From Rhodosorus marinus CCMP1338 (lineage: Eukaryota; Plantae; Rhodophyta), in NCBI GenBank assembly GCA_029953675.1, contig JAMWBK010000005.1:2356001-2420000 (forward strand): a DNA stretch of 64,000 nt, written 5' to 3'. A model generated the notes under the pieces. That model searched no databases and was not told the origin of the DNA. It was given only the letters and a program-made list of their open reading frames with translations. The position numbers and the translations under genes were made by a program. Shown here piece after piece: positions 3,922 through 51,470 of the stretch (positions are counted from its first letter, which is position 1; each line of letters starts with the position of its first letter).

Positions 3922-5157
3922 ATGTCCAAAGTGCAAGCATGGCATGTGAGAACGCGTGTGACGCGTGGCCAGCTCGGGATTGAAGGCAATGAGGAGTTCG
4001 CCGCCAAGTGGACCAAGTCTCAGGAGAAAAAGAATCGATACAAAGGATGGCTTGTTCGGAATCCAAAAACTTATTCGATGAGCGAACTCATAGAAGCGGA
4101 TGGCCCACAGAGAAAGCGTCTGATCCTGCAGTACTCGCTTGATGGCCGCTTCAAAGACGCTCGTCTAGTGTTTGACAGACTCTACGACGAAAGCTTGTTC
4201 TCTGACGAAGACGAGGAGAAAATCGCTTTTTATTCTATTTTGAAGCATATGGCAGACTATCCAGTGGAGCTCAAATCCCAGCTCTTGGAGACCTACCGGA
4301 GATATCAGGAGCTCTTTGGACTGGATGGTCGTGCTGTCGGTTCCATGTTGAAGTCGACCGTTCTGAAGGGTCTCCATGACAAACCAGAGGAGCGGGAACC
4401 GTATTTTCAAGATATGAAACTACTGGAAGCTCCAGAGCAGACGATTGCGATGGGCATCTACGTCCGGAAGATCGTAAAGAAACTGCAGGATTATGATTTT
4501 GCATTGGAGGTGGCTCCGAAATTCAAGGGATGGAGTCCACTGACGGTCAACTACGTGCTGGACAATTGTATAAAGAATGAGCACGTGCATGAGGGATTGA
4601 GGATCTATGACGCGCTGAGGGCCGCAGGAGGAACTGGGAACGACGAAACGTTTAGTCTGCTGGTTCGTGCCTACTCAAAGCTCAAGCAGTACAAGGTTGT
4701 TGAACGTCTAATGGATCTGTGCAAACGGAAGAAAATACCACTTGATGACCGCGCGTTGCATGCCGCTGCGATAAATATGGAGGAAAGTGCCAATATGGTG
4801 TGGGCAGAATATGCTCTTGAAGAGCTGACGCAGAGGACTAGAGTAGTAGGGAGCCATAAGCTTTTCCGCGCATCGCTTCGGACGTATTTGGACATGGGAA
4901 AACATCAAGCAGTGATCGACATCTTCGAAGATTGGATCCAGGCGAAGCAGAAGGAAAAACCAGGACGTCTAGAATACTCTATGTACATCGCCGCGCTCCA
5001 CGCAGTAGGAAGGCATGAAAAGGCTGTAGCTACGAACTACTCAATACGCTTGCGGCAAAGACCACCGCTGCCGGAGAAAGCTAATCAAATCCTTCGACGA
5101 AGCATTGACAATATGGACAACGAGGAACTCTTTTTCACAGAGGACGAAGACCGCTAG
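3922..5157 (+). CDS. PPR-like helical repeat protein (411 aa, intronless)
   Basis: Long ORF with about 35-aa helical repeats, e.g. LTVNYVLDNCIKNEHVHEGLRIYDALRAAG, DETFSLLVRAYSKLKQYKVVERLMDLCKRKKIPLD, RLEYSMYIAALHAVG. Confidence 0.65.
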   Translation: MSKVQAWHVRTRVTRGQLGIEGNEEFAAKWTKSQEKKNRYKGWLVRNPKTYSMSELIEADGPQRKRLILQYSLDGRFKDARLVFDRLYDESLFSDEDEEKIAFYSILKHMADYPVELKSQLLETYRRYQELFGLDGRAVGSMLKSTVLKGLHDKPEEREPYFQDMKLLEAPEQTIAMGIYVRKIVKKLQDYDFALEVAPKFKGWSPLTVNYVLDNCIKNEHVHEGLRIYDALRAAGGTGNDETFSLLVRAYSKLKQYKVVERLMDLCKRKKIPLDDRALHAAAINMEESANMVWAEYALEELTQRTRVVGSHKLFRASLRTYLDMGKHQAVIDIFEDWIQAKQKEKPGRLEYSMYIAALHAVGRHEKAVATNYSIRLRQRPPLPEKANQILRRSIDNMDNEELFFTEDEDR

Positions 5158-5706: not shown

Positions 5707-7559
5707 TCATTGACGTTCTACGTCAATTGCAAGCGAACATGATCGTTCCCTTGAAGACTTCCCTGCTTGAAACAGTCTGTCGTTCCTGGCTATGCTCCCC
5801 GCGCACCCAAGAGGCCCTTGCGATTGTTCGAGCGGTATTCGCGCACGCCCTTGCGCCTCGAAAACCGCAAGAGCCTCGAAAGCAAAGCCTGCACCGTGAA
5901 GCCTTTTTTGATCGAGAAGGGAACGGAAGTTTCCTCGGGACACTACTCCACACCAAGAAAACCGTTCCTTTCCTTACCTAGAAATCGATTCAGTAGTCTT
6001 GGCGTCCACTTTTGTCCGTGACTTCCCACCCAAGATGCTCTTGGTTGCCTCCTTCTCTCCCTCGAGAACCAGTCCTTGAATCAACTCCCAGAGGTGATCA
6101 CTCTGGCAATCCTGTAACAGAAAAAGGTCAAGCAACCGCACCGCATGAGCACCATACGGAAGAACCACCACTAAGAAGGCATGGAACATCCATGAAAAGG
6201 GCGCAAACACACCTCATCTCGCAGCGCGTCAATCTTGTTCTTCAGCGCGTGCCAGGCTCTATGCAACGCGTCGCTTTCTTTCTGCAGAGAGGCGCGTTCC
6301 GATGTGAGGCTCCGGCATAGCTTTTCCAGTTTGTCTCGCTTTTCTTTCTCGCGTTTCTCGGCCTTGACTGCATCTTCCAGGTCCGCCTTGATCGATACCA
6401 ACTGATACATCGCAGCATTGCTCTTCTTGTTTAAGTTTGTGTTCTCCTCGCGCAGTGAAGCATTTGCCTTTTGAAGCTGCTTGACCGTTTTCGACATTTT
6501 CTCCATTTCCACCGTATAAGCACTGAAAACCTGGTTATTCTGATCCAAAGTCTCCTAAGGGCCGGTTTCACCGATGTTTGAACGCGTACGTACCAAGCTG
6601 AGTCTCAACTGTGCAAAGTATCTAAAGAACTTTTGTCGTGGGAGGAGCTTACCTGAAAGCTGTCAAATTTGTTTCCATATTCTGTGAGTTGTTTTCGAAG
6701 GTTAGTTTCTGTTTTGCTCTGAGTCTTTGTTAGTGCCTCGAGATGAGCGACCTTGGCCTTCAGTTCCTCCGTCGACGCCCCTTGCTCTCGAGCCCTGGCT
6801 TCAGCGAGCTCGAGCTCTAGTTCCTTTGTACGAAGCTGAAGACCAAAGTGCTCTTCTCGTACTTCGTATCTAGTATCAAGATCCTTCAGTTGTTCTTTCA
6901 AAATTCGAACTTCCTCAGTGTGTCGTTCGTCAGTTTTCGCCTTCAACTCGGCATTCCTCTCGGTCTCAGTCATTGTCTCTCTCAATTGAGCCAAGAGCTT
7001 CTCCTTCAGTGCCCCGTCCTCAGCTAGCTTCTTTCCGGTTTGCTCACTCAGTTCGCGGTTCTGTCTCGAGAGCTCACGGCTCAACGCCTCCAACTTGCTT
7101 TTGGCAGATTTTGTTCTATTTAAATCAACCTTCATGGAGTCTGCGTCGTGCTCTGCACTACGTCGCAGTCTTCTCTCGTTGCCAATCTCATACGCCAGAG
7201 TCCTCATCTCGTTGACTCTCTGCAACAGCTTGGATTGAAGGTTTTTCAGCTTCACTTCTGTCGGAGTATGCGTCGAGCTCACTAGAGCCATGACCTCTGA
7301 TGTCGCTTTCCTATGGGCCTCATCTGCATCCAGCACGGAGACAAGACAATCAATCCCCCTGAAGCTCGCTATATGGAACAGCTGTACCGGCAGAACCCAA
7401 AAACCAGCACTTACCTGCTCTCTTTTCATCTTCATTCTTGTGTTGAGGGGCCTTTTCTAGCTCCTCAATCCTCCTCCAAAGCAGCTTGTGTAATTCCCCA
7501 TTCTCAGAGGAACTGACCTGCTTTTTGTCCATCCCTGCAAGCGGTTTGTGTTTTCCCAC
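5707..7559 (-). CDS. Taxilin-family coiled-coil protein, multi-exon; both ends uncertain
   Basis: KSKLEALSRELSRQN, YEVREEHF, LRKQLTEYGNKFDSFQ, VFSAYTVEMEKMSK, KLEKLCRSL follow the taxilin pattern; further 5' exons may lie at 7600-8000. Confidence 0.8.
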
Positions 7560-12550: not shown

Positions 12551-14121
12551 ATGAGGCTGTGTGTAGCAGCTGGAGATCTGAATAGGAAAATGTTTGAACC
12601 AGTCCGAGTTGAGAGGCCAGACCCGGATGGATCGGGTTTGCTTTCTGCGCGGGCGGTGCAGAAATTGTTGGAGAGGCACGGTTCAAGAATCGTGCTCCCC
12701 TCGTGGAGTGAGATAACCAGCCTAAAGGTTTGTTTGATGCTCATGTCTGCTTTATCACGTGCACATACGCCGTGAGGAAAGACCGCCTCATGCGTAAACA
12801 ATGTTCCTTTTCTGTTTCCCCCTGCAGAGTTTCTCCATCGAAAGCCCGGTCCCGGAGAAACCGAAACATGCTATCATACTGGTCCATGGCCTTCAGGGGA
12901 AACCAGAAGACCTCGATTATCTGCAAAAGGTGTTGTGGGATGCAAACGTTGATCATTCCGCCCGGGTTGTTGTACACGCGACGAAGGTTAACAGCGGGAA
13001 AACTAAGGATGGAATTCAAGCCGGCGGAACCAGAGTGGCGAACGATATTATGAACTTCGTGAGAGATCATCCAGAGCTCGAGGAAATATCAGTTGTCGGC
13101 TTCTCTCTGGGTAAGCTGTACTACTTGTGTTTTCCTAGTTTTGTTAATACAGCGGCTAACTAGCGCGCAATATTTTGTCTTGCTTCTCGTGGTTATGTTT
13201 CAATGGTTGGCGTAGGTGGAATCTATGCGCGCTATGCTGTGGGGCTGCTGTACAACACGCAAAATAACCGCGTTGCCAACCTCTCCCCAAGGACGTTTAT
13301 TACTGTTGCGTCACCGAACCTGGGAGTCCGTGGGTTTGGAGTATATCGTTTCTTCCACGAAAACATACAATCGGTATGCTACCAAGAGGGACTAAGGAGG
13401 AAAGACGCTGAATTCGACCCCCGCTCACCCTACATCTTCTTTTTGTTTCCTTTTGAACAAAAGACGCTTTCTAAAGTGTTTGCTGGGAGAACCGGAAGCG
13501 AGCTATTTATGGCCGATTCAAGTAGGCCCCTGCTTGTGCAAATGAGCGAGGACCAACCAGGATTGCCATTTATATCAGCCCTCAAGAGCTTCCAAAAGAG
13601 AGTTCTTTACGGGAACGTGCAAAACGATTTCATGGTATCGTTTGGAACTGCCGTACTGGATCCAAATATTGTTGGATTGAAGGCCAATGTCACACCTCCC
13701 GCCGATGCTGAGATTATAGACCATGAGGAGGATAACCTCGGCTGTCGTGTCTGGTTCTCGTCAAAGCCCACGACTGGTAAGTTGAAGACGTTTCCTTGCG
13801 CCGAACGCCAATTGAAACCGATCTCGGGAAAGTTTCCTCGTTCTAATGGTGTGCTATCGTTTTGTATGGGTTACGTTAGATGACGCTCTGGCAATTGGGC
13901 ACGGCGACTCTTTTGAAGAGGTAATGTCTAGGAGACTGCGAAGCATAGGCTGGGAAACTGTGGGAGTACATTTCGATGGGATTTTCCCAGCTGCTCACAA
14001 TCTTATTATTGCGAAGATGAGGCACGAGTTTGAGTGGGTACTGTTCACCCGATGCGGTTCTCGGTCTGTGCACCACATCGTGCAAAGGATTCTTCACCAA
14101 GAGCTTGATGGGACGCCTTGA
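12551..14121 (+). CDS. DUF676 putative serine esterase/lipase (alpha/beta hydrolase), multi-exon; start uncertain
   Basis: HAIILVHGLQG, ISVVGFSLGGIYARYAVG (GxSxG across an intron), FITVASPNLG, GRTGSELF, LKSFQKRVLYGNVQNDFMV. Confidence 0.88.
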
Positions 14122-17285: not shown

Positions 17286-19799
17286 CTACGCTACCTTCCC
17301 GATGTACCTAGAAAGTACTCTGACCCTCGCAGGTCCGAGTTCGTCCGCATAAGAATTCTCCGGCAACTTGTCTCCTAGTCGACTCTTCCCGTATGCCAGA
17401 AGCTCCATTGAAGCTAGGCGGACGTCGACTCTCCCGTGATTTATCAGTTTCAGGATCCTGGCCAGATGCTTCTCAAAGAGTCTCAAAACGACGTCCCCAG
17501 CTACTCGCTTCAGCGACAAACGTGAGGCAACCGCTGCGAGCCTCGAGCTGTTCCAGTGGTCAGCACTTGGGTTGTCGAGAAGTTCCATCATCGCACTGGC
17601 GACGAGTTCACCTTCGAGATACCTGCAGACTGCTAGGCTTCGCACAGCGTACTCCAAAGACTCCGCGGCTTCGGACGATCGTCTGAAACGACTGGCAGCA
17701 GATATCAACTTGAAGCACAAACGTTTAACGTCAGACCCGTCCATCGTATGCATTTCCCGATTTCTAAGAAGCTGGTCGATATGCTGCCACGAGATTTGAG
17801 CAGAGCCCTCGTCTCCGTTTATTCCAATGTCAAGGATCCCATCCCAATAGCCTTTTGTCTGCCTCCCAACTGCGGCTCCTACGCCCTTCGGCTTATTACT
17901 ATTCACATCTTCTGCTACAATCTCGGAGTTATCGTTGCCCGAATTCTCCTTGTCTGCGTCGCTTCTATCCATCTCCTGCGGTACGGGTGGTGCAACTGGA
18001 TTTTCCTGCTCAAGCTGCAACTTCATAGCCGATTCTATTTCCCCACGTGCACGGGCAGGAGCTTCGAAACTGGAGACGGGAAGTTTGGGGGGAGAGGAGG
18101 GCGAAGAAGAGCCGACCTCCTTGTCCCCAATAAGCTCAAGAACGGTTCTACGATCTGTCATCTCCAACGTTTCAGCAGTAAGCACCAGAGCTCCTGGCGG
18201 TGCGAGAGCAGCTGTATCACTTAACACCATCGCTGCTCCTTTCCTGACCTCAGCACTCCGACCACGGGCCAGAGGAGCTAAGATTCTTGCCGCGCCCTCT
18301 AGGAGCGAAGCTCGCCACTGAATCGAGTACTCGTCGGCTCCAGCCAGACATTCGCTAAGGTATTCAAGCAACGATGTAGTGGATTTCTCACTACTCAGTT
18401 CAGATCCATACTTGCCAGACACCGTTCCACTTAGAACCTTCAACTGAATCGAAAACAATGCGTGAACGTCAAGACGAGATTCAAACGCCCGAACAACAAG
18501 AATGACTCCGTTTCGAACACTCCGATGCGGATGATTCTTCCTCGTCAGAATTCTAGCCACCGCTGCAGGGTTTCTTTCCACTACGACTTGAACTTCTGTT
18601 GCTTCCCGAATAATCTCCGCCATAGCGTTCAACGCTGCGGCAACAACTCTGACATGCGGGTCAGACAAGCTATCCGAGATCGCTCGAAAGGCTACCTCAA
18701 CAGAGGTTGTGTCTGAAAACGTCAGTCTCAAGACGCGTTTCTCCAGCGTAGATATCCTAGCTCCCCAATCCGTCGCCTCCTTCGAGCCTGAGGAACTCGA
18801 AGGCTTCAACGGCGCTAGCTTTGCGATTCTTCCTGGTCGAGCAGGAGTCACATCAGATACGGCGCTGGCACCTGCTGCTGTAAAGTTTGGTGCTTGGCCG
18901 GATGTGGTAACCCTGCGCGCTTTTAATCTCGTAGTTGTCCTAGCGGCGAGTTTGTTACCATTCGTCAAGGGCTCCGCTTGCGTAGACGGCATTATAGAAC
19001 GTCGACGAGCCGATTCTCGAACTTTCTGAGGTGATGGTGCGATATCTCCCTCGCCTTTCTCTTCCGCTATCGCCCTCTGAGTAATTTCATCCAAGCCCCT
19101 CATTAAAGCTGCAGCCCGGTCCACATACATAATCTCAAATATGCAGAAGTTTTTTCTGCTCCGTCTCCTAACCTCTGCTAGTTGATCGATCAGCCCCAAG
19201 TGCACAGCGTGCTCAAGAAGTCCAACGCTCTTGTCCAGCTCCGAACGAGGATGGCGATCCAGAATAATGCCAATGTATTCTGCTACCGCTGACCTGGTCG
19301 CGTTAGCATTCTTTCTTCCTGCGCAATGCACAAGACTGACGATGACAGCAGGTGGCATTCGCGAACTGTTCAGCACACGCCTCATGGCCTCAGCCCCAGA
19401 TTCCGATATGACCTGAATCGTGACTGCAGATGTCTTTAGCAGAGCTGGGATAATCGCCTCTCCTAAACACTCGCCAAATTGATCGCCGAGGCATTCTGCC
19501 ATTGACGCCAGATTTTCGCAGGCTTCACGGACGACAGCCGAACGGAGGTCACCAACCTGTGCGGCTATCTGTGTCCGAAGCCCCCGTAATCCATTGATAA
19601 ATACCAACAAAAGACTCTGGTCCTCTGCGCCCGCTACGAACACTGCGATCTCCTTGCATTTGCGTAGAGCGCGAACCCGTTTATCCCATTCCGCTCCCTT
19701 CACGTCTCCAAGCAACCGCTTAATGTTCTCCAACTCACAACTAACATCCCGAACACTGTGAATCTCCACAGCTGGGCCCACTTCCGATCTCCGAGCCAT
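17286..19799 (-). CDS. CLASP: CLASP (CLIP-associating microtubule protein, TOG/HEAT), intronless 837 aa
   Basis: EWDKRVRAL, VGDLRSAVVREACENL, LLKTSAVTIQVISESG (CLASP_N/TOG), S/R/P-rich linker, further HEAT repeats. Confidence 0.88.
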   Translation of the reverse strand: MARRSEVGPAVEIHSVRDVSCELENIKRLLGDVKGAEWDKRVRALRKCKEIAVFVAGAEDQSLLLVFINGLRGLRTQIAAQVGDLRSAVVREACENLASMAECLGDQFGECLGEAIIPALLKTSAVTIQVISESGAEAMRRVLNSSRMPPAVIVSLVHCAGRKNANATRSAVAEYIGIILDRHPRSELDKSVGLLEHAVHLGLIDQLAEVRRRSRKNFCIFEIMYVDRAAALMRGLDEITQRAIAEEKGEGDIAPSPQKVRESARRRSIMPSTQAEPLTNGNKLAARTTTRLKARRVTTSGQAPNFTAAGASAVSDVTPARPGRIAKLAPLKPSSSSGSKEATDWGARISTLEKRVLRLTFSDTTSVEVAFRAISDSLSDPHVRVVAAALNAMAEIIREATEVQVVVERNPAAVARILTRKNHPHRSVRNGVILVVRAFESRLDVHALFSIQLKVLSGTVSGKYGSELSSEKSTTSLLEYLSECLAGADEYSIQWRASLLEGAARILAPLARGRSAEVRKGAAMVLSDTAALAPPGALVLTAETLEMTDRRTVLELIGDKEVGSSSPSSPPKLPVSSFEAPARARGEIESAMKLQLEQENPVAPPVPQEMDRSDADKENSGNDNSEIVAEDVNSNKPKGVGAAVGRQTKGYWDGILDIGINGDEGSAQISWQHIDQLLRNREMHTMDGSDVKRLCFKLISAASRFRRSSEAAESLEYAVRSLAVCRYLEGELVASAMMELLDNPSADHWNSSRLAAVASRLSLKRVAGDVVLRLFEKHLARILKLINHGRVDVRLASMELLAYGKSRLGDKLPENSYADELGPARVRVLSRYIGKVA

Positions 19800-41270: not shown

Positions 41271-44200
41271 TCAGGTATCCTTGGCGGATTTTGAGCTCTG
41301 ATCTGATTCAGCGGAGATAATCCCACTGTCCTTTTCTGCTGTTCCATCCGCATCGAGCGGGGTTTTCTCCGAAATTCTTAGACGCTCAATTCGTATTGTT
41401 TCGCTTTCTGATTTTCCACTGGAGTTAGTGGTCGGCTTCTCCGGATGCTCCAGCCTTTCTTCCTTTTGAATACCCTTGATATTCCAAGGAAGTCGTCCGG
41501 AGGGATGAGCACTGCTCGTGTCATCAGACTCGGCACCTGATTCAGGTTCAGATCCCGACTTCGATGTTGCATGAGGCGTACTGGTGCTTCCATTCATTTC
41601 CGTCGCCTATAGAATCGGAAAAGCGCATGCAATGAGAGCGTAAGCGATGGTTATCGAGAACAGAGTTTCTCGCTGACAATTAAAGCACGCACCTTCCCTC
41701 CATCGCTCACTGATCCATTGCTCTGGTTCTCAACGGTTTTTGAGCTCTTCGTATATCCATCCTCCGACGTCGCTTGCTTCTTGTCGACGGCATCAGGTGA
41801 CCCGTTTGTCTCCGACCTTATCACTCTCGTTTGTTGTCTCTCCAACAGATCTGTCAGAATTGACTTCATTATCTACGCAGCAATGGGCTTTTGCATCAGT
41901 GATCGGCCAAAGCCTTTGTGTACATGCTTAACGGGTTCGACCTGTTACCAAACTCACCTCTGTCTTCGCATTATCCGCCCCTTTTACCGGTTCTGCCGAT
42001 GTTTCGGCGGGTAAGTCAGTGTTGGTTTGGGCATCTGCATAGAGAAATGCGGCGTCACTGCGTCCCTCCTCAGTTGTTTCCTCCGCTAAGCCCTTGTCAT
42101 CTGCTTCATTATCGGCGACCTCCTGCTGCTTGCTGAAAAACGGAAACCATGAAAATTGCTTTTCAGGCTGCTGTTCTAAATCAGCCGAAGTCGGCTGCCC
42201 CGCTGGATCATTTTGCTTGCGAGTCTCGTTCTCCTGTATCTCGTCCTCGCTCTTCTTCTCCGCCTCCGTGCTGTTCCTCTTCTCGTCGTCGCTTTGCATC
42301 TGCTCATTGTTCTCCTTCTTATCCCCTCTCGGCCGTTTGAAGAAGTCTACCACCCCCGAGAAAATGTTCTGCGCCTGCTTGGCCACAATCGGTGGCTGCC
42401 CGCTGTTGGGCTGAAGGGGCTGTTCTTTATCCAAGCTCTTCGACGGCTCTATTTCAAGAGGCTGCCCTGTTTTATCTTCATCCGGAGACACGTCCTCCAC
42501 AGCTCGATTTGGTGGAACGATTCCGTCTCTTACGCTAGAGATCCAATTTGACAATTTGCCCAGGTCCGATCGCGTATCAGAACCGTTTTCGTCGACTCGC
42601 AGCTCCGCTTCTCTTAGCTTCTCGGGATTAGCCGGTACCTGAGTTTCACCCCACTCCCATCTCTCTCCGACTGGTTCCTCCCCGAAAATGGGACCTGTTC
42701 GACAGTTCAGTGCTGGTTAGTTACTTAAACTCGAAAAGGGTAGCTTCAACGTAGTGCTTTAAGCAACCGTAGTTTTTCGACAAGCACCATACCCTCCGGA
42801 AAACCAGCTGTATCAACGGTTTGTACTGCCTTGTCGGCATGGCCAACTTCCTTCGGAACAACCCTTTGCTTCTTCTCAATTTTCCTTCTGGTTTCGGCTC
42901 CTAAAACAAGTCGAGTAGTTTTTAGTAGTCGCAAGCGAGGCATCCCCGAGAAAGGACCTTTATCGCATCAAACTTACGAGTCTTGAAGTAGTGCTCGTTG
43001 TCGCTGTCATCAACAAACTTTCTGTAGTTGAGGTTAAGATGCAACCTAGCCTTGTCGCTCACACCTCCGCGAAGCGGTACCCACAGATCGGTCTTTTTAC
43101 CCTCTTGGAGGCTCCCAAGTCGCATACGGAAACTGCCAACAGGTCTACTCAATGCACCAAACCTTGTTTTCGCAAGAAGGTCGCAAGTCAGCGGTTAGGC
43201 TGTGTTCTAGGGTTGGCGAGGTCTCCCGAGTTGGTGTAAGAGAGTATCCTGATTACCTATTGTGAACCTCGATCTCAAGGACATCATTTTTGGGATCCCG
43301 CACGAGCAGCTCGAACTGCTGGTTCCAGATTGGCGCGGTCCCTCCTCCTTTTTCAGATGTGGTTGTGTCGTTCTTACTCTTGATGACTTTGTCGTTGAGG
43401 CGAATGTAGCAGAATGGATTCTTAAGCCCCATTGAAGTTTGCCCGCTAAGTTCTTTCGCTTCAATAAGAATAATTGCCAATAACCCCTTGTATTGCGCAT
43501 CTAGTCGCAAGAAGACAACAAGAAAACAGTTAGAAGCGGCACCAGAGGACAATGGGATACAAGCACTGCCGTTCATAGCTGTAAAAAATTCTGCAACTAT
43601 CCCGGAACTCGTTTTCTTTCAAACCGAATCGCACCCGTCTGGTCAAGATCCGCAGCGAAGGCATTGACATCGGCAATCGTGGGATCGAGGTACATGATGG
43701 ACTTCGCCGGGAGAATAAACTGGCTCGGAAGCTCGGTTGTGAGAAGATTTCTAAGGAACTTGCTCAATCCAGGCACAGTCATCAAGTTCACAGCCTACGG
43801 TTCAACGACGAGAGCCCATATTAGAGATGGCAAGGGCGACGACAATCGCCCCTTTACAGCTCGGGAAAACATCGCTCCCTTGACCCACCTTGAATGGCTT
43901 GATAACAACGTCGAGATTCGGCTTCTCTGCGAGAGCCCATGAGATCTCGTACAAGTACGGTGGCTCGCGTGTAAGCTTTGCCCGAACCCAGGCTTTGGCG
44001 TCAATATTCATGTCCCCCACGAGAACTGGCACATTGACACCAAAACGTCTAAAGGGTCCAGTCAAGCTGACTTTCATCACAAAATTTGCGTCTCCGGTGT
44101 ATCTGAGAACACGAGAGCGTACGCATGAAGTCTCCCTCAGCCTTTTGCTGTGTATAAACGTACTAACGCTAAGATCGCCACTGGTGAAGAACGCAACAAA

Positions 44201-45409
44201 CCTGAAATTGAAGTTGTAGGCCAGGTGTGAATCAATCCGTGTGGGTAATTTCTCCACATTTCTGACCCAGAACGGTCGTTCTCCCATTTCTACAGACTCC
44301 ACACTGATTTTGTCGACAAAAGGGGGCTTGTTCTCCAGCAAGTTCTCGTCAATTGACTCTTGCATCAACTCCTTGGCCATTTTACTCAGGTCCTTTGGAT
44401 ACAATCTCCATACCTGCATGTGCCACCATTGCTTTAGCTCAAAAACTATCAAGCAAGTTCTTCTTCGGGAGCGAATATCGGAATGTCGGAAACAATTCGT
44501 ACCTTTCTAACCGCGGCGTTAACCCATTCCGCGGGTTCTTGGTCAGTCATCTCTCGCGCACGAAAGTCCTATGCAAGTGCGCAGGAACGTATACAAAGAC
44601 AAGTTTTTGCAAATCAGCACTACTTGAAAGACGGCGTTTTTGTACGGTACGTTCATGGGAGGCAGATTCGTATATCTGTAGAGCCACTTACCCCTGAGTT
44701 CTGGAAAAGGGACTCGTTCTCTCCAGCTTGAACAAAAGTGGCACTGCTGAGCGGATTCACGACCTTTCTGAGAAAACGAAGCATGGGCCATTCATCTGAC
44801 AGAGATTGGACAGTTGACCAGAGAACGGCAAACCCGAACCGGACTAAATTGGTCAAGAAGGTTAAGAACCTATCCAAGGTTCGGGTTCGCGTACAAGTTC
44901 AGATATTGCTTTGAAGAGCAATCAATTCCAGTAGATAGATCCATCATTGAGATCTTCCCATTGCCGCGAGCACCAGCTTACCTAATTGCGACATATGTGC
45001 CTATGAACCAGATCAGCATGAGCTGAAGGCCAGTGGGAAACAGCTCCGGCCTGGCCGCCGCGGCAGGATCAACCGGTTGCAACCTCCTCAGTCGTTCAAG
45101 TTCATTCAGAAACGCCGTAGCGATACCAGCACCCGAGTCGAAGACATTAAGCATGTACTTGATTGCCTCCAGCATCATCCTCGGAATAGAGAGAGCAAAC
45201 TTCAACACCTTGACCCCCACAGTCTGTGCAGCACTCGCAACCACACCCACGTCTACATTCTCCAGTCCCATCACACCCATTGTCACAGCCTTTCTCCTTC
45301 TGACCTTCCACTGAACCCAATGCTTTCTCGATTTCCCAACACACAATCTGGTCGGTCGGCTCAAAACCCGACCGGTACCCTCAACGAAACTAATCTCAGA
45401 CTCTTCCAT
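41271..45409 (-). CDS. SMP-domain + C2 protein (synaptotagmin/NTMC2T-like) with a long acidic C-terminal region, multi-exon
   Basis: TM region, then SMP (KPPFVDKISVESVEMGERPF...NLMTVPGLSKFLRNLLTTELPSQFILP) and C2 (GLLAIILIEAKEL...NPFCYIRL...PIWNQQFELLVRDP). Confidence 0.82.
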
Positions 45410-46567: not shown

Positions 46568-47657
46568 TCACTCTTCGTCTTCATAGTCGTCCTCGTACTC
46601 ATCCTCTTCTGCTTCTTCTTCTTCATAGTCGTAGGAGTCGCCATTTATGAATGGATTATAGCCCTGCAGTTCTGGAAACCTGTGCGACCGAGAAGAACAA
46701 ACCCGATCAGAAACAAGTTTTCAGACCATGCTCGATGGAGATATTCAAGGAGCGAACTTACTCATCAACAACGCTGCAGGCGCTAGTATGTACCGACCCT
46801 GGGAAGCAATACTTCTTCTGGATCCATCGCGCAAGGATCTTCCTTGTTTCGTACAGCTCTTCTTCCTTAAGGTCTAGACCAAGTGCAAAGGCGTGCATGT
46901 AAATGGTTGCGATCTCTTTCTCGCGGTCGCCGAGGACATCCTTGTGCAGGACGCAACAAGGGCATGCGCCTATGGCGAATTCGTTGATATCGGCCTCCCA
47001 TTGCGGCTTGCGCTTGAAGGCAGTAAATTTCAGCGAACCAACTTCTTCGATCTCGTCAATCTTATGTTGAATCTTGTACAGTTTCCCAAACCCCGGCCCA
47101 TGTCCAAAATAGTGCCTGCTCACCTTCTTCGGTGTATAATTCTCGAGGCCAGGCCAATTCTCCCCTTCCTCCCTCATTATGTGATGAAGGGGCATGTAAA
47201 ACCCATGGGAATGTACCAAGTACGATATCACAAGCAACTGCCACGTTGATCCACAGTTGCCCACCGAGATCTCAAAAAGTACTCGGTCCAGGCTAGCCTT
47301 GGTCTGGTCAAACTTCTGCACCCTACACTTTTTCTTTGCTTCGGCGTACGAAATTTGACTGACCCTAAGTACTTCCTCATCAGGTACGGAGAGAACGTCC
47401 CCATCCTTGCCAAGTTCTGGAACCTTCATCATATTCGGAAGGAAAGGGATCATGCGGTTCGGCGAGTTGTTGAATGACATATTCTTGGTTTTTGCTGTGC
47501 TGCTCCCCGAGTGATGAAACACAAGGAAAATCAGAAGCAGAATAATGACAACCCCCCCGACAATCTTCAAGAGCCCTTGCCTTCTCAGGATCGACTTTAC
47601 ATCAGCCCCAGCTCTGCTGACGCTACCTCCTTCTATAAGAGAATAACCCCCGTCCAT
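46568..47657 (-). CDS. Type II membrane protein, paralog 1 (putative sulfotransferase-fold), 2 exons
   Basis: 299-codon ORF plus intron 46680-46761 and an acidic last exon; TM IVGGVVIILLLIFLVF; clear paralog of the 48356-49231 ORF. Confidence 0.75.
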
Positions 47658-48355
47658 CCTTTCTTTCTACAAAAGATTTACCTTCAACGCCTCAATAACA
47701 CACAATAATCTCCGTCTGAATACCTAGACCTCTCCATTAAATCCCCTCTCACCACCCCTCCCCTCCCCCTCACCCCCCCCTCCAGACCAGCCCGCCATCC
47801 CCTACAACCCGATCGCGTTTAGAAGACATCCCCACCTATCCACATTCAAAGCAACTCCAACCTCAAAAGAATCATTCTGGCCAGCAACATCCAACTCCCA
47901 TTTTGGCCCACAAAACGAAGGTGTGACAGCTTGGCAATGCCTTGCTAAAATTGAAACAAAATCACTCTAAGACTTTGACAGCCTGTCCCGTCGGAAAAGA
48001 TCAAATAAAACCTAAATCATGAATATGCGAAACATCAAGAAATGAGCAAAATAGTATCCCCCCCCAGCAAAAGACCAGGGTAGGCTTTTTAACAAATGGA
48101 ATCAATATTTTCGCCTTGGGCTAGGATCTTGACAAGGGGTTGATAGAATTGATAAAATGAGAACGGACACGTGGTGGTTTCTCAATCAGGGAAATTCGAA
48201 CATGAAATTTTATCATCACGTCATTATTTATTGATATAAGTGACAATAGGTTTTGTTGATGCTGAGAGAACGCAAGAGGAACCATCATTCCACAAACCAA
48301 TGACGGGAATAACCAGGCAGTGAGAGCGGTCGTCGCGGGGGAGCATAGGGGTGGG

Positions 48356-49231
48356 CTACTCTAAATCTTGATACACACTAGGATCAAAATCGAGATCTTT
48401 CAGCTCCGGGAACTCTTCCAGAACCTGACACGCGGATTGATGAGCGGAACCTGGGTAGCAGTAGTGAAGTTTGATCCACTCTGCCTGCTTCAACCGAATT
48501 TCACGCACTTGCTCTTCGTTCAGGTCGAAGCCAAGCGCAAACGCATGCATGTAAATCAGCGCAATTTCAGACTCTTCTTTCCCTAGGGCGTCTTTGACTA
48601 CAAAGCAGCAAGGGCACACGCCCTGCGCAAATTTGTTCGCGTCCGCTTCTTTTCCTTCCAGAAGCTTGAAAGCATTAAAAATCAGGATTGATGCGTTCAT
48701 TAGTTCAGGTACTTCATGCTGAGTCTTGAAGAGCCGCCCAAAAGTGGGCCCAGAGCCCCATTCCCTTTTCTCTTCGTAGTGCAAATTTTTTAGTCCCGGC
48801 CAATTTTGTGTGGTTCCCTTCTGCACGTGAACTACCGGCAACCGATAGCCGTGTTGCTGCACAAGGTTTGAAATCACTGTAAGTTGCCAAGTTGAGCCAC
48901 AATTTCCGATCGAAATCTCGTTCATTATTAATTCTTCTCCTCGTTTGGCTGAAGAGACTGCGGGCACCGAGCAGATCTGCTTCACCCTGTCATACGGCGT
49001 CTTTTCAACCTTGATCGCGTCCGTCACGTTCAACTCATACAAGTCTCCGTTCGATGCCAGCTCTGCCGCTCTTATCAACCCGGGCAGGAACGGAATCATG
49101 CGCTTTCCTCGCGGGACGTTGTCGACTTGCATGGGGGGCCCCCCCTGCGCGTGCCTACGTACAAACGAGGCAGCAAGAAAGCATGCTACGATTGTTACTA
49201 TAACATACCAATGAGATGTCTGCATTTTCAT
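48356..49231 (-). CDS. Type II membrane protein, paralog 2 (putative sulfotransferase-fold), intronless
   Basis: Probable start MKMQTSHWYVIVTIVACFLAASFV; shares RMIPFLP, EISxGNCGSTWQL, WPGL, KxQH, CPCC, IYMHAFALG and EFPEL with paralog 1. Confidence 0.75.
   Translation of the reverse strand: MKMQTSHWYVIVTIVACFLAASFVRRHAQGGPPMQVDNVPRGKRMIPFLPGLIRAAELASNGDLYELNVTDAIKVEKTPYDRVKQICSVPAVSSAKRGEELIMNEISIGNCGSTWQLTVISNLVQQHGYRLPVVHVQKGTTQNWPGLKNLHYEEKREWGSGPTFGRLFKTQHEVPELMNASILIFNAFKLLEGKEADANKFAQGVCPCCFVVKDALGKEESEIALIYMHAFALGFDLNEEQVREIRLKQAEWIKLHYCYPGSAHQSACQVLEEFPELKDLDFDPSVYQDLE

Positions 49232-50437: not shown

Positions 50438-51470
<1,033 letters not shown>

Follow-up and report, generated by a model that had tools for sequence, protein, structure and literature searches.

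A tandem gene pair in the red alga Rhodosorus marinus belongs to an orphan family of predicted secretory-pathway P-loop-type proteins resembling sulfotransferases

Cytosolic sulfotransferases of the PF00685 type, such as SULT1A1 (1LS6) and SULT2A8 (7EOV), use 3′-phosphoadenosine-5′-phosphosulfate (PAPS) and have a strand-loop-helix in which G-(S/T)-T-W marks the passage from loop to helix, a strand-end lysine ~57 residues downstream (K106 of the ‘KTH’ motif in SULT1A1) and a basic residue past the next strand (R130), with neither the Walker A lysine nor Walker B. Golgi type II sulfotransferases (PF03567, PF06990, the HS3ST/NDST branch of PF00685, and TPST) set a short cytosolic N-terminus, a signal anchor and a stem before a lumenal, Cys-bearing domain of ~250 residues, and SIMIBI GTPases (FtsY/SRP54, MeaB/ArgK) likewise place a P-loop strand-loop-helix in a parallel sheet. 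We analysed a 64,000-nucleotide stretch (the window) of nuclear DNA from Rhodosorus marinus CCMP1338 (contig JAMWBK010000005.1, positions 2,356,001 to 2,420,000), a unicellular red alga of the class Stylonematophyceae with a chromosome-level assembly (PMC10250338). Its minus strand carries two paralogous genes within 46568–49231, for which an original prediction, read from the letters of the window, had proposed an unrecognised sulfotransferase-fold family of type II membrane proteins. They belong to a predicted secretory-pathway P-loop family that resembles sulfotransferases and whose sulfotransferase function is unproven.

The products of the two genes, here paralog 1 and paralog 2, were 42% identical over 266 residues (BLASTP, E 7e-79), which confirmed them as a same-strand paralog pair. 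In an alignment of 8–9 family members, whose identity averaged ~50%, 51 columns were invariant, and the blocks first picked out in the pair, RMIPFLP, EIS(V/I)GNCGSTWQL, WPGL, FG(K/R)L(Y/F)K(I/T)QH, CPCC, IYMHAFALG and YC(F/Y)PGSxHxSAC..EFPEL, were all present and conserved across them. The P-loop-like motif lies at 47235–47273 in paralog 1 (EISVGNCGSTWQL, residues 129–141) and at 48881–48919 in paralog 2 (EISIGNCGSTWQL, residues 105–117; coordinates given for the pair refer to the minus strand, and residue numbers to paralog 2 unless stated). Within it E105, I106, S107, G109, G112, S113, T114, W115 and Q116 were invariant, the cysteine of GNCGSTW was confined to Rhodosorus, and the family-wide motif was G(N/S)xGSTWQ. 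Farther along, FGRLFKTQH (48716–48742; 47064–47090 in paralog 1) places the invariant K169 and Q171 at the end of strand 166–170, followed by H172 in seven of nine members, at a spacing of K-x-Q-H and not K-T-H. LIFNAFKLL (48659–48685) carries a conserved K/R189 just past strand 183–188, and its equivalent in paralog 1 is KFTAFKRKP (47004–47030), of which only (F/Y)(N/T)A(F/W)(K/R) is conserved. The segment of CPCC and FVVKD (48590–48616; 46938–46964 in paralog 1) holds the invariant C206, C208 and C209 and, at the end of strand 210–212 in the paralog 2 model, the invariant K213, next to which D214 varies between D, E and N. In the C-terminal helical part, from IYMHAFALG to YCYPGSAHQSAC (48428–48556; 46776–46904 in paralog 1), H229, R246, C258, H264 and C268 were invariant, and together with C87 this makes six invariant cysteines.

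Structures were predicted with AlphaFold2 on an eight-sequence alignment, and secondary structure was assigned with DSSP. The model of paralog 2 had a mean predicted local distance difference test score (pLDDT) of 81.6 and a predicted TM-score (pTM) of 0.79, the model of the paralog 1 lumenal domain a pLDDT of 78.4 and a pTM of 0.82, and the order of helices and strands was the same in both. In paralog 2, strand 102–107 (..NEIS) leads through loop 108–112 (IGNCG) into helix 113–126, which begins S113-T114-W115 (pLDDT ~86 for the motif), and in paralog 1 the corresponding elements are strand 67–71, a loop and helix 79–91 (model 2). The placement of GNCGSTW at a strand-loop-helix junction, a point at which the original prediction had laid itself open to refutation, was thus seen in two independent models. 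Named top-50 neighbours from three Foldseek searches were almost all P-loop-class, with no Rossmann, flavodoxin or other alpha/beta class among them, which makes a strongly diverged P-loop-type alpha/beta fold well supported for the modelled lumenal domain. Judged by the usual criteria, no solved structure matched the predicted domain well enough to be assigned the same fold.

Searches against the PDB placed sulfotransferases at the head of the paralog 2 list (mouse SULT2A8, E 1.8e-3; SULT1A1, E 2.0e-3, with a probability of 0.97, the highest), and PAPS sulfotransferases accounted for 23 of the 50 best matches, including ranks 1 and 2. The remaining matches were to FtsY/SRP54, MeaB, a putative uridine kinase, designed P-loop ATPases and a primase-helicase. 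For paralog 1, sulfotransferases held the highest query TM-scores (0.35–0.39). Taken over both proteins, sulfotransferase matches ranged from E 1.8e-3 to 0.25, with TM-scores of 0.27–0.39 and root-mean-square deviations of 10–17 Å. The choice between a sulfotransferase-like and a GTPase-like domain rests on this enrichment and on motifs. The motifs agree with PF00685 at the junction, where G112, S113, T114 and W115 are invariant and set hydroxyls and an aromatic at the helix N-terminus, and resemble it at K169, which would correspond to the SULT1A1 strand-end lysine, and at K/R189, which would correspond to SULT R130. In P-loop-type folds, an active site that binds phosphate or sulfate is usually marked by invariant basic or polar residues at the C-ends of successive parallel strands, beside a glycine-rich loop at the N-terminus of a helix.

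We also compared the family with sulfotransferases at the level of sequence profiles. The human SULT1A1 sequence was reconstructed and checked against PDB 1Z28 (685 bits, full length), and a PF00685-type alignment of 14 sequences was assembled from SULT1A1 and mammalian, bird and four bacterial lineages (PF00685/PF13469). Two homolog searches for the profile gave best 120 matches that were all at least 60–68% identical to the queries, and three bacterial sulfotransferases encoded on plasmids were added to broaden it. Alignment with hhalign to SULT1A1 alone was not significant. The best path against the PF00685-type alignment, likewise not significant, was colinear with the original prediction and paired GNCGSTW with PKSGTTW, RLFKTQH with RLLKTH and ILIFNA with VVYVA, and the distance from loop glycine to strand lysine was 57 residues in the family (G112–K169) and 56 in SULT1A1 (G50–K106). 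We treat this colinearity and spacing in the sequences as a lead, not as evidence.

Several results weigh against a sulfotransferase assignment. No PDB match in Foldseek reached E ≤1e-3 and no TM-score reached 0.4, while the SIMIBI GTPases FtsY, SRP54 and MeaB scored about equal to sulfotransferases (SIMIBI E 2e-3 to 4e-2). Paralog 1 matched the PDB more weakly (E ≥0.036), with MeaB and FtsY first by E-value, and its prediction was less stable, the five AlphaFold2 models spanning pLDDT 37 to 78. Against the PF00685-type alignment, hhalign returned a probability of 0.4% (P 0.16, score 18.2), and this score was matched by 12.5% of column-shuffled profiles and 30% of block-shuffled profiles (blocks of 12); both profiles were shallow (effective number of sequences 2.3 and 3.3), which leaves the comparison with low power. 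No sulfotransferase hidden Markov model (HMM) matched in Pfam scans at E up to 10, and no sulfotransferase was found in PDB sequence or profile searches. At the position of the lysine or arginine of the 5′-phosphosulfate-binding (5′-PSB) loop, Lys48 in SULT1A1, seven of eight aligned sequences have asparagine and one has serine; to our knowledge, every PAPS sulfotransferase characterised to date has this residue, which matters for its catalysis. The histidine of KxQH, offset by one from His108 of SULT1A1, is replaced by leucine or phenylalanine in two of nine members (P0003 and P0004). The family also lacks the RxxxxxxxS motif for the 3′-phosphate, the Ser138-type helix motif of SULT and the C-terminal RKGxxGDWK; the helix after the strand resembling the 3′-phosphate-binding (3′-PB) site has no conserved serine and carries N/D198 instead. 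Finally, red algae already have carbohydrate sulfotransferases of the canonical PF00685, PF03567 and PF06990 types (PMC4659905), which leaves no gap that a new family would have to fill, and the earlier statement that red-algal sulfotransferases are poorly defined needs qualifying to that extent.

Other differences from SULT enzymes concern the build of the domain. The segment from the 3′-PB-like strand to the next strand is ~45 residues shorter in the family, which adds an N-terminal subdomain, six conserved cysteines, a membrane anchor and an acidic tail. The overall architecture is that of the Golgi type II sulfotransferases, with a signal anchor and a Cys-bearing, predicted lumenal domain of similar size, and by analogy the setting may be shared too, since sulfated glycans are made in the Golgi. 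None of those enzymes, however, appeared among the top-50 structural neighbours or in the HMM scans, and as far as we know all of their families keep the 5′-PSB lysine or arginine that this family lacks.

Taken together, the original prediction came through the tests by which it proposed to be judged, in that the predicted structure is of the P-loop type, the loop lies where it was expected and no confident match to an unrelated known family emerged from Pfam, NCBIfam, PDB sequence and profile, or exhaustive HMMER searches; it failed on the defining residue, the loop lysine or arginine. With marginal matches and without that lysine, the sulfotransferase reading is only partly supported, by marginal structure and motif resemblance, and is unproven. 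The proposed degenerate PSB loop holds for the strand-loop-helix position, the invariant GSTW and the missing Lys/Arg; its cysteine proved specific to Rhodosorus. The equation of KxQH with KTH is supported at the invariant lysine of the strand end, less clearly at the histidine and in the spacing, and the suggestion that KFTAFKRKP may be the 3′-PB site is supported in part, by a Lys/Arg at the C-terminal end of a strand, while RKP is not conserved and no recognisable Arg..Ser motif is present. As for the sulfotransferase-fold family, a P-loop-type fold with SULT neighbours was predicted, but without HMM or profile homology, and the description as unrecognised fits an orphan family lacking Pfam, NCBIfam or PDB sequence matches, though the sulfotransferase identity itself is unproven.

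Given these observations, we consider it likely that the proteins are lumenal and P-loop-type and that their GNxGSTW loop is where a phosphate or sulfate ligand binds. The G(N/S)xGSTWQ strand-loop-helix would clamp a phosphate or phosphosulfate, and K169, K/R189 and K213, at the C-ends of the next three long parallel strands, would line one pocket with the loop, in a domain that is probably stapled by disulfides between the six invariant cysteines. As to mechanism, PAPS-dependent O-sulfotransfer is our leading candidate, held tentatively. Under it, the Ser-Thr-Trp of the loop would, like T51, T52 and W53 of SULT1A1, bind the 5′-phosphosulfate and stack on the adenine, K169 would take the role of the ‘KTH’ lysine, and K/R189 or K213 could replace both the missing loop lysine and the 3′-phosphate arginine. 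In these algae the acceptor may be a glycoprotein or the sulfated polysaccharide, rich in galactose/xylose, that is bound to the cell; Stylonematophyceae have a cell-bound sulfated polysaccharide, in which galactose and/or xylose are abundant where it has been measured (PMC9031348).

Equal scores for MeaB, FtsY, SRP54, the putative uridine kinase and the designed ATPases, and their lead in paralog 1, could instead reflect a lumenal P-loop enzyme of other activity (for example a glycan or protein kinase or phosphotransferase, or a nucleotide phosphatase) with NTPase-type ancestry, whose loop would bind the phosphate of a nucleotide, nucleotide-sugar or phosphoglycan. The viral structure library BFVD, which returned only generic P-loop ATPases and helicases (TM-score ≤0.31), points the same way, as does the lack of significant profile similarity to sulfotransferases. 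We nevertheless regard such an enzyme as unlikely. The lysine of Walker A GxxxxGK(S/T) is absent, the motif reading S-I-G-N-C-G-S-T with serine at the lysine position in all members, and no invariant aspartate or glutamate follows strands 133–135, 166–170, 183–188 or 210–212 as Walker B would require; a Walker-type NTPase was rejected on these grounds, and canonical hydrolysis or transfer from a nucleoside triphosphate is unlikely. SIMIBI GTPases in particular are cytosolic and have GxxGxGK(T/S) with its lysine, a Walker B aspartate and guanine motifs, none of which occurs in the family. Moreover, a loop that reads GSTW and runs into a helix has the form seen in sulfotransferases, and sulfotransferases make up a tiny share of PDB P-loop structures yet nearly half of the best paralog 2 matches.

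A pseudoenzyme on a P-loop fold, which in the lumen might bind, scaffold or chaperone, say, sulfated ligands or the enzymes of polysaccharide synthesis, would fit the loss of the loop lysine in all members, the candidate catalytic histidine that is not invariant, a fold far from every solved enzyme (TM-score ≤0.39) and the small, lineage-specific family. We think this improbable, since the loop and S113, T114, Q116, K169, Q171, K213, H229, R246 and H264 are invariant among paralogs only ~40% identical, and the ratio of nonsynonymous to synonymous substitution rates (dN/dS) is 0.14–0.22; active sites or ligand sites that are being maintained typically look like this, and the pattern fits binding and catalysis alike. 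Still less probable in our judgement is that function resides in the cysteines and histidines, with CPCC, C87, C258, C268, H229 and H264 forming a zinc or iron metal site or a redox centre and the P-loop likeness being mere heritage. Six cysteines and two histidines are indeed invariant and concentrated, as in metal sites, in CxCC and CxPGSxHxSAC, which are among the most conserved blocks, but the P-loop motif is at least equally conserved, an even number of lumenal cysteines is most simply read as three disulfides, and no metal or redox family was recovered by sequence or fold, the RimO matches (E 0.07–0.12) being noise. Sulfotransfer from PAPS remains the most likely mechanism among those considered, whereas its most specific form, an unrecognised sulfotransferase family restricted to Stylonematophyceae that lost the loop lysine and draws its charge from lysines on neighbouring strands, is in our view rather doubtful.

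We assessed membrane topology from hydrophobicity and flanking charge. A single hydrophobic 19-residue segment near the N-terminus was found in all nine members (Kyte-Doolittle 1.6–3.1; ≤1.3 elsewhere), in agreement with the predicted single N-terminal anchor. In paralog 1 this signal-anchor or transmembrane segment spans 47517–47573 (residues 29–47 of that protein; Kyte-Doolittle 3.08; net charge of the N-terminal flank +3), and in paralog 2 the hydrophobic segment spans 49160–49216 (residues 6–24; Kyte-Doolittle 1.86; AlphaFold2 helix 5–28). The charge of the N-terminal flank exceeded that of the C-terminal flank in seven of nine members, was equal to it in paralog 2 and its ortholog, and was never lower. 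The anchor, the flank charge and the six invariant cysteines point to single-pass type II proteins (N-in, C-out) of the secretory pathway with a putatively lumenal conserved domain of ~245 residues. In paralog 2 and its ortholog, where only five residues precede the segment, this segment may be a cleavable signal peptide and not an anchor. All full-length members end in an acidic tail with at least one tyrosine flanked by aspartate or glutamate: the paralog 1 tail (46568–46679) has 20 D/E and 5 Y among its last 40 residues, the paralog 2 tail lies at 48359–48400, and that of a third R. marinus paralog is ~60 residues long. These tails, predicted to be lumenal, resemble tyrosine-O-sulfation sites.

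The family has a narrow distribution. A word-indexed homolog search of 5.8 billion proteins returned six clusters, and a HMMER profile search run exhaustively over 1.84 billion representative proteins returned only four matches, all family members, consistent with the claim that the pair is lineage-specific. Members comprise three paralogs in Rhodosorus (two of them in the window), two in Bangiopsis sp. CCMP1999 and one in sequencing run SRR22824290, whose 3.8-kb contig contains no second family copy; a degenerate-pattern scan of Joint Genome Institute (JGI) metagenome contigs found no members. Pfam scans of both paralogs and all eight aligned members at E up to 10 assigned no family and no domain to any member, NCBIfam gave no family match, and at permissive thresholds these two databases produced noise-level matches only (ODV-E18, over the transmembrane helix, ZP-N, PsbU and RimO). 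PDB sequence and profile searches yielded a single chance match, to the flavivirus pr peptide (E 0.37). On sequence searches the family is an orphan, and to date Stylonematophyceae are the only group in which it has been seen.

Paralog 1 consists of exon 1 (46762–47657; codons 1–298 plus 2 nt, donor GATGA|GTAAGT), an 82-nt GT..AG intron (46680–46761) and exon 2 (46568–46679), which encodes (E)FPEL and the acidic, Tyr-rich C-terminal tail and includes the stop. The spliced product of 335 residues is identical to GenBank KAJ8905190.1, ‘hypothetical protein NDN08_001699 [Rhodosorus marinus]’, on a 3.19-Mb contig, and it is splicing on exon 2 that recovers the EFPEL block of paralog 1. Paralog 2 is a single exon of 291 codons (48356–49231, ATG at 49231). 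Its GenBank model (P0007, 258 residues) starts at Met34 and leaves out the stretch 49133–49231 with the N-terminal hydrophobic segment, whereas the MMETSP transcript of its ortholog (P0008) starts at the Met equivalent to 49231 and includes that segment, so the deposited annotation probably truncates the paralog 2 signal anchor. A GTG-extended upstream open reading frame (ORF) reaching 49333 is an artefact of ORF listing, and antisense ORFs within both genes are unsupported. In a second Rhodosorus strain (JGI 3300016967), contigs L006 and L007 retain the 82-nt intron of paralog 1 at ~1000–1085, which led gene callers to stop the protein at 299 residues (P0006) and to call exon 2 as a separate ORF of 53 residues. 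The two contigs stem either from transcripts that kept the intron or from carried-over genomic DNA.

Both paralogs are under purifying selection, with dN/dS relative to the second strain of 0.14 (paralog 1) and 0.22 (paralog 2); between the strains the intron differed at 15 of 82 bases, compared with ~7.6% divergence in exon 1 of paralog 1. MMETSP transcripts were found for the paralog 2 ortholog and for the third paralog (P0010, KAJ8902642.1), a protein of 364 residues that is encoded on another contig (2.1 Mb), unlinked to the pair, and is ~40% identical to both window genes. In a neighbour-joining tree paralog 2 grouped with Bangiopsis P0002 and with a further relative, P0003 (95% bootstrap), while the three Rhodosorus lineages and Bangiopsis P0004 formed an unresolved basal polytomy. 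The clustering of paralog 2 with Bangiopsis P0002 implies that the duplication behind the tandem pair predates the Rhodosorus-Bangiopsis split, and as old paralogs the two genes probably differ in acceptor or position specificity.

Neighbouring genes in the window are ordinary eukaryotic genes unrelated to the pair and give no clue to its function: a weakly matched PPR protein at 3922–5157 (+), a taxilin at 6605–7435 (−), a DUF676 putative serine esterase at 13203–13883 (+), a CLASP N-terminal domain at 17286–19799 (−) and a MUG190-like SMP domain at 43802–44452 (−). A truncated ORF at 50447–50857 (+) contains a low-complexity stretch of basic and acidic residues and matched nothing in Pfam; its end looks like the start of a CCCH zinc finger from a splicing factor of the Cwc24/RNF113 type, interrupted by an intron. 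The many short ORFs of the window are consistent with the ~3 introns per gene of the R. marinus genome (PMC10250338).

Relevance of the family does not extend beyond a small class of algae, and the structural similarity on which the functional claim currently rests is weak. Even if the sulfotransferase reading is wrong, the pair represents a well-defined orphan family that is strongly constrained and expressed and has a confident predicted fold with a clear candidate ligand site, which makes it a tractable target for a function screen. If that reading is true, a new family would join the enzymes that sulfate algal polysaccharides, and a PAPS loop could work without its lysine, which would matter for recognising sulfotransferases in genomes. 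A PAPS site that draws its charge from neighbouring strands would then be catalytically arranged in a new way, linked to a class-specific, cell-bound sulfated polysaccharide, and the family would offer a handle on how Stylonematophyceae assemble their cell-bound sulfated matrix.

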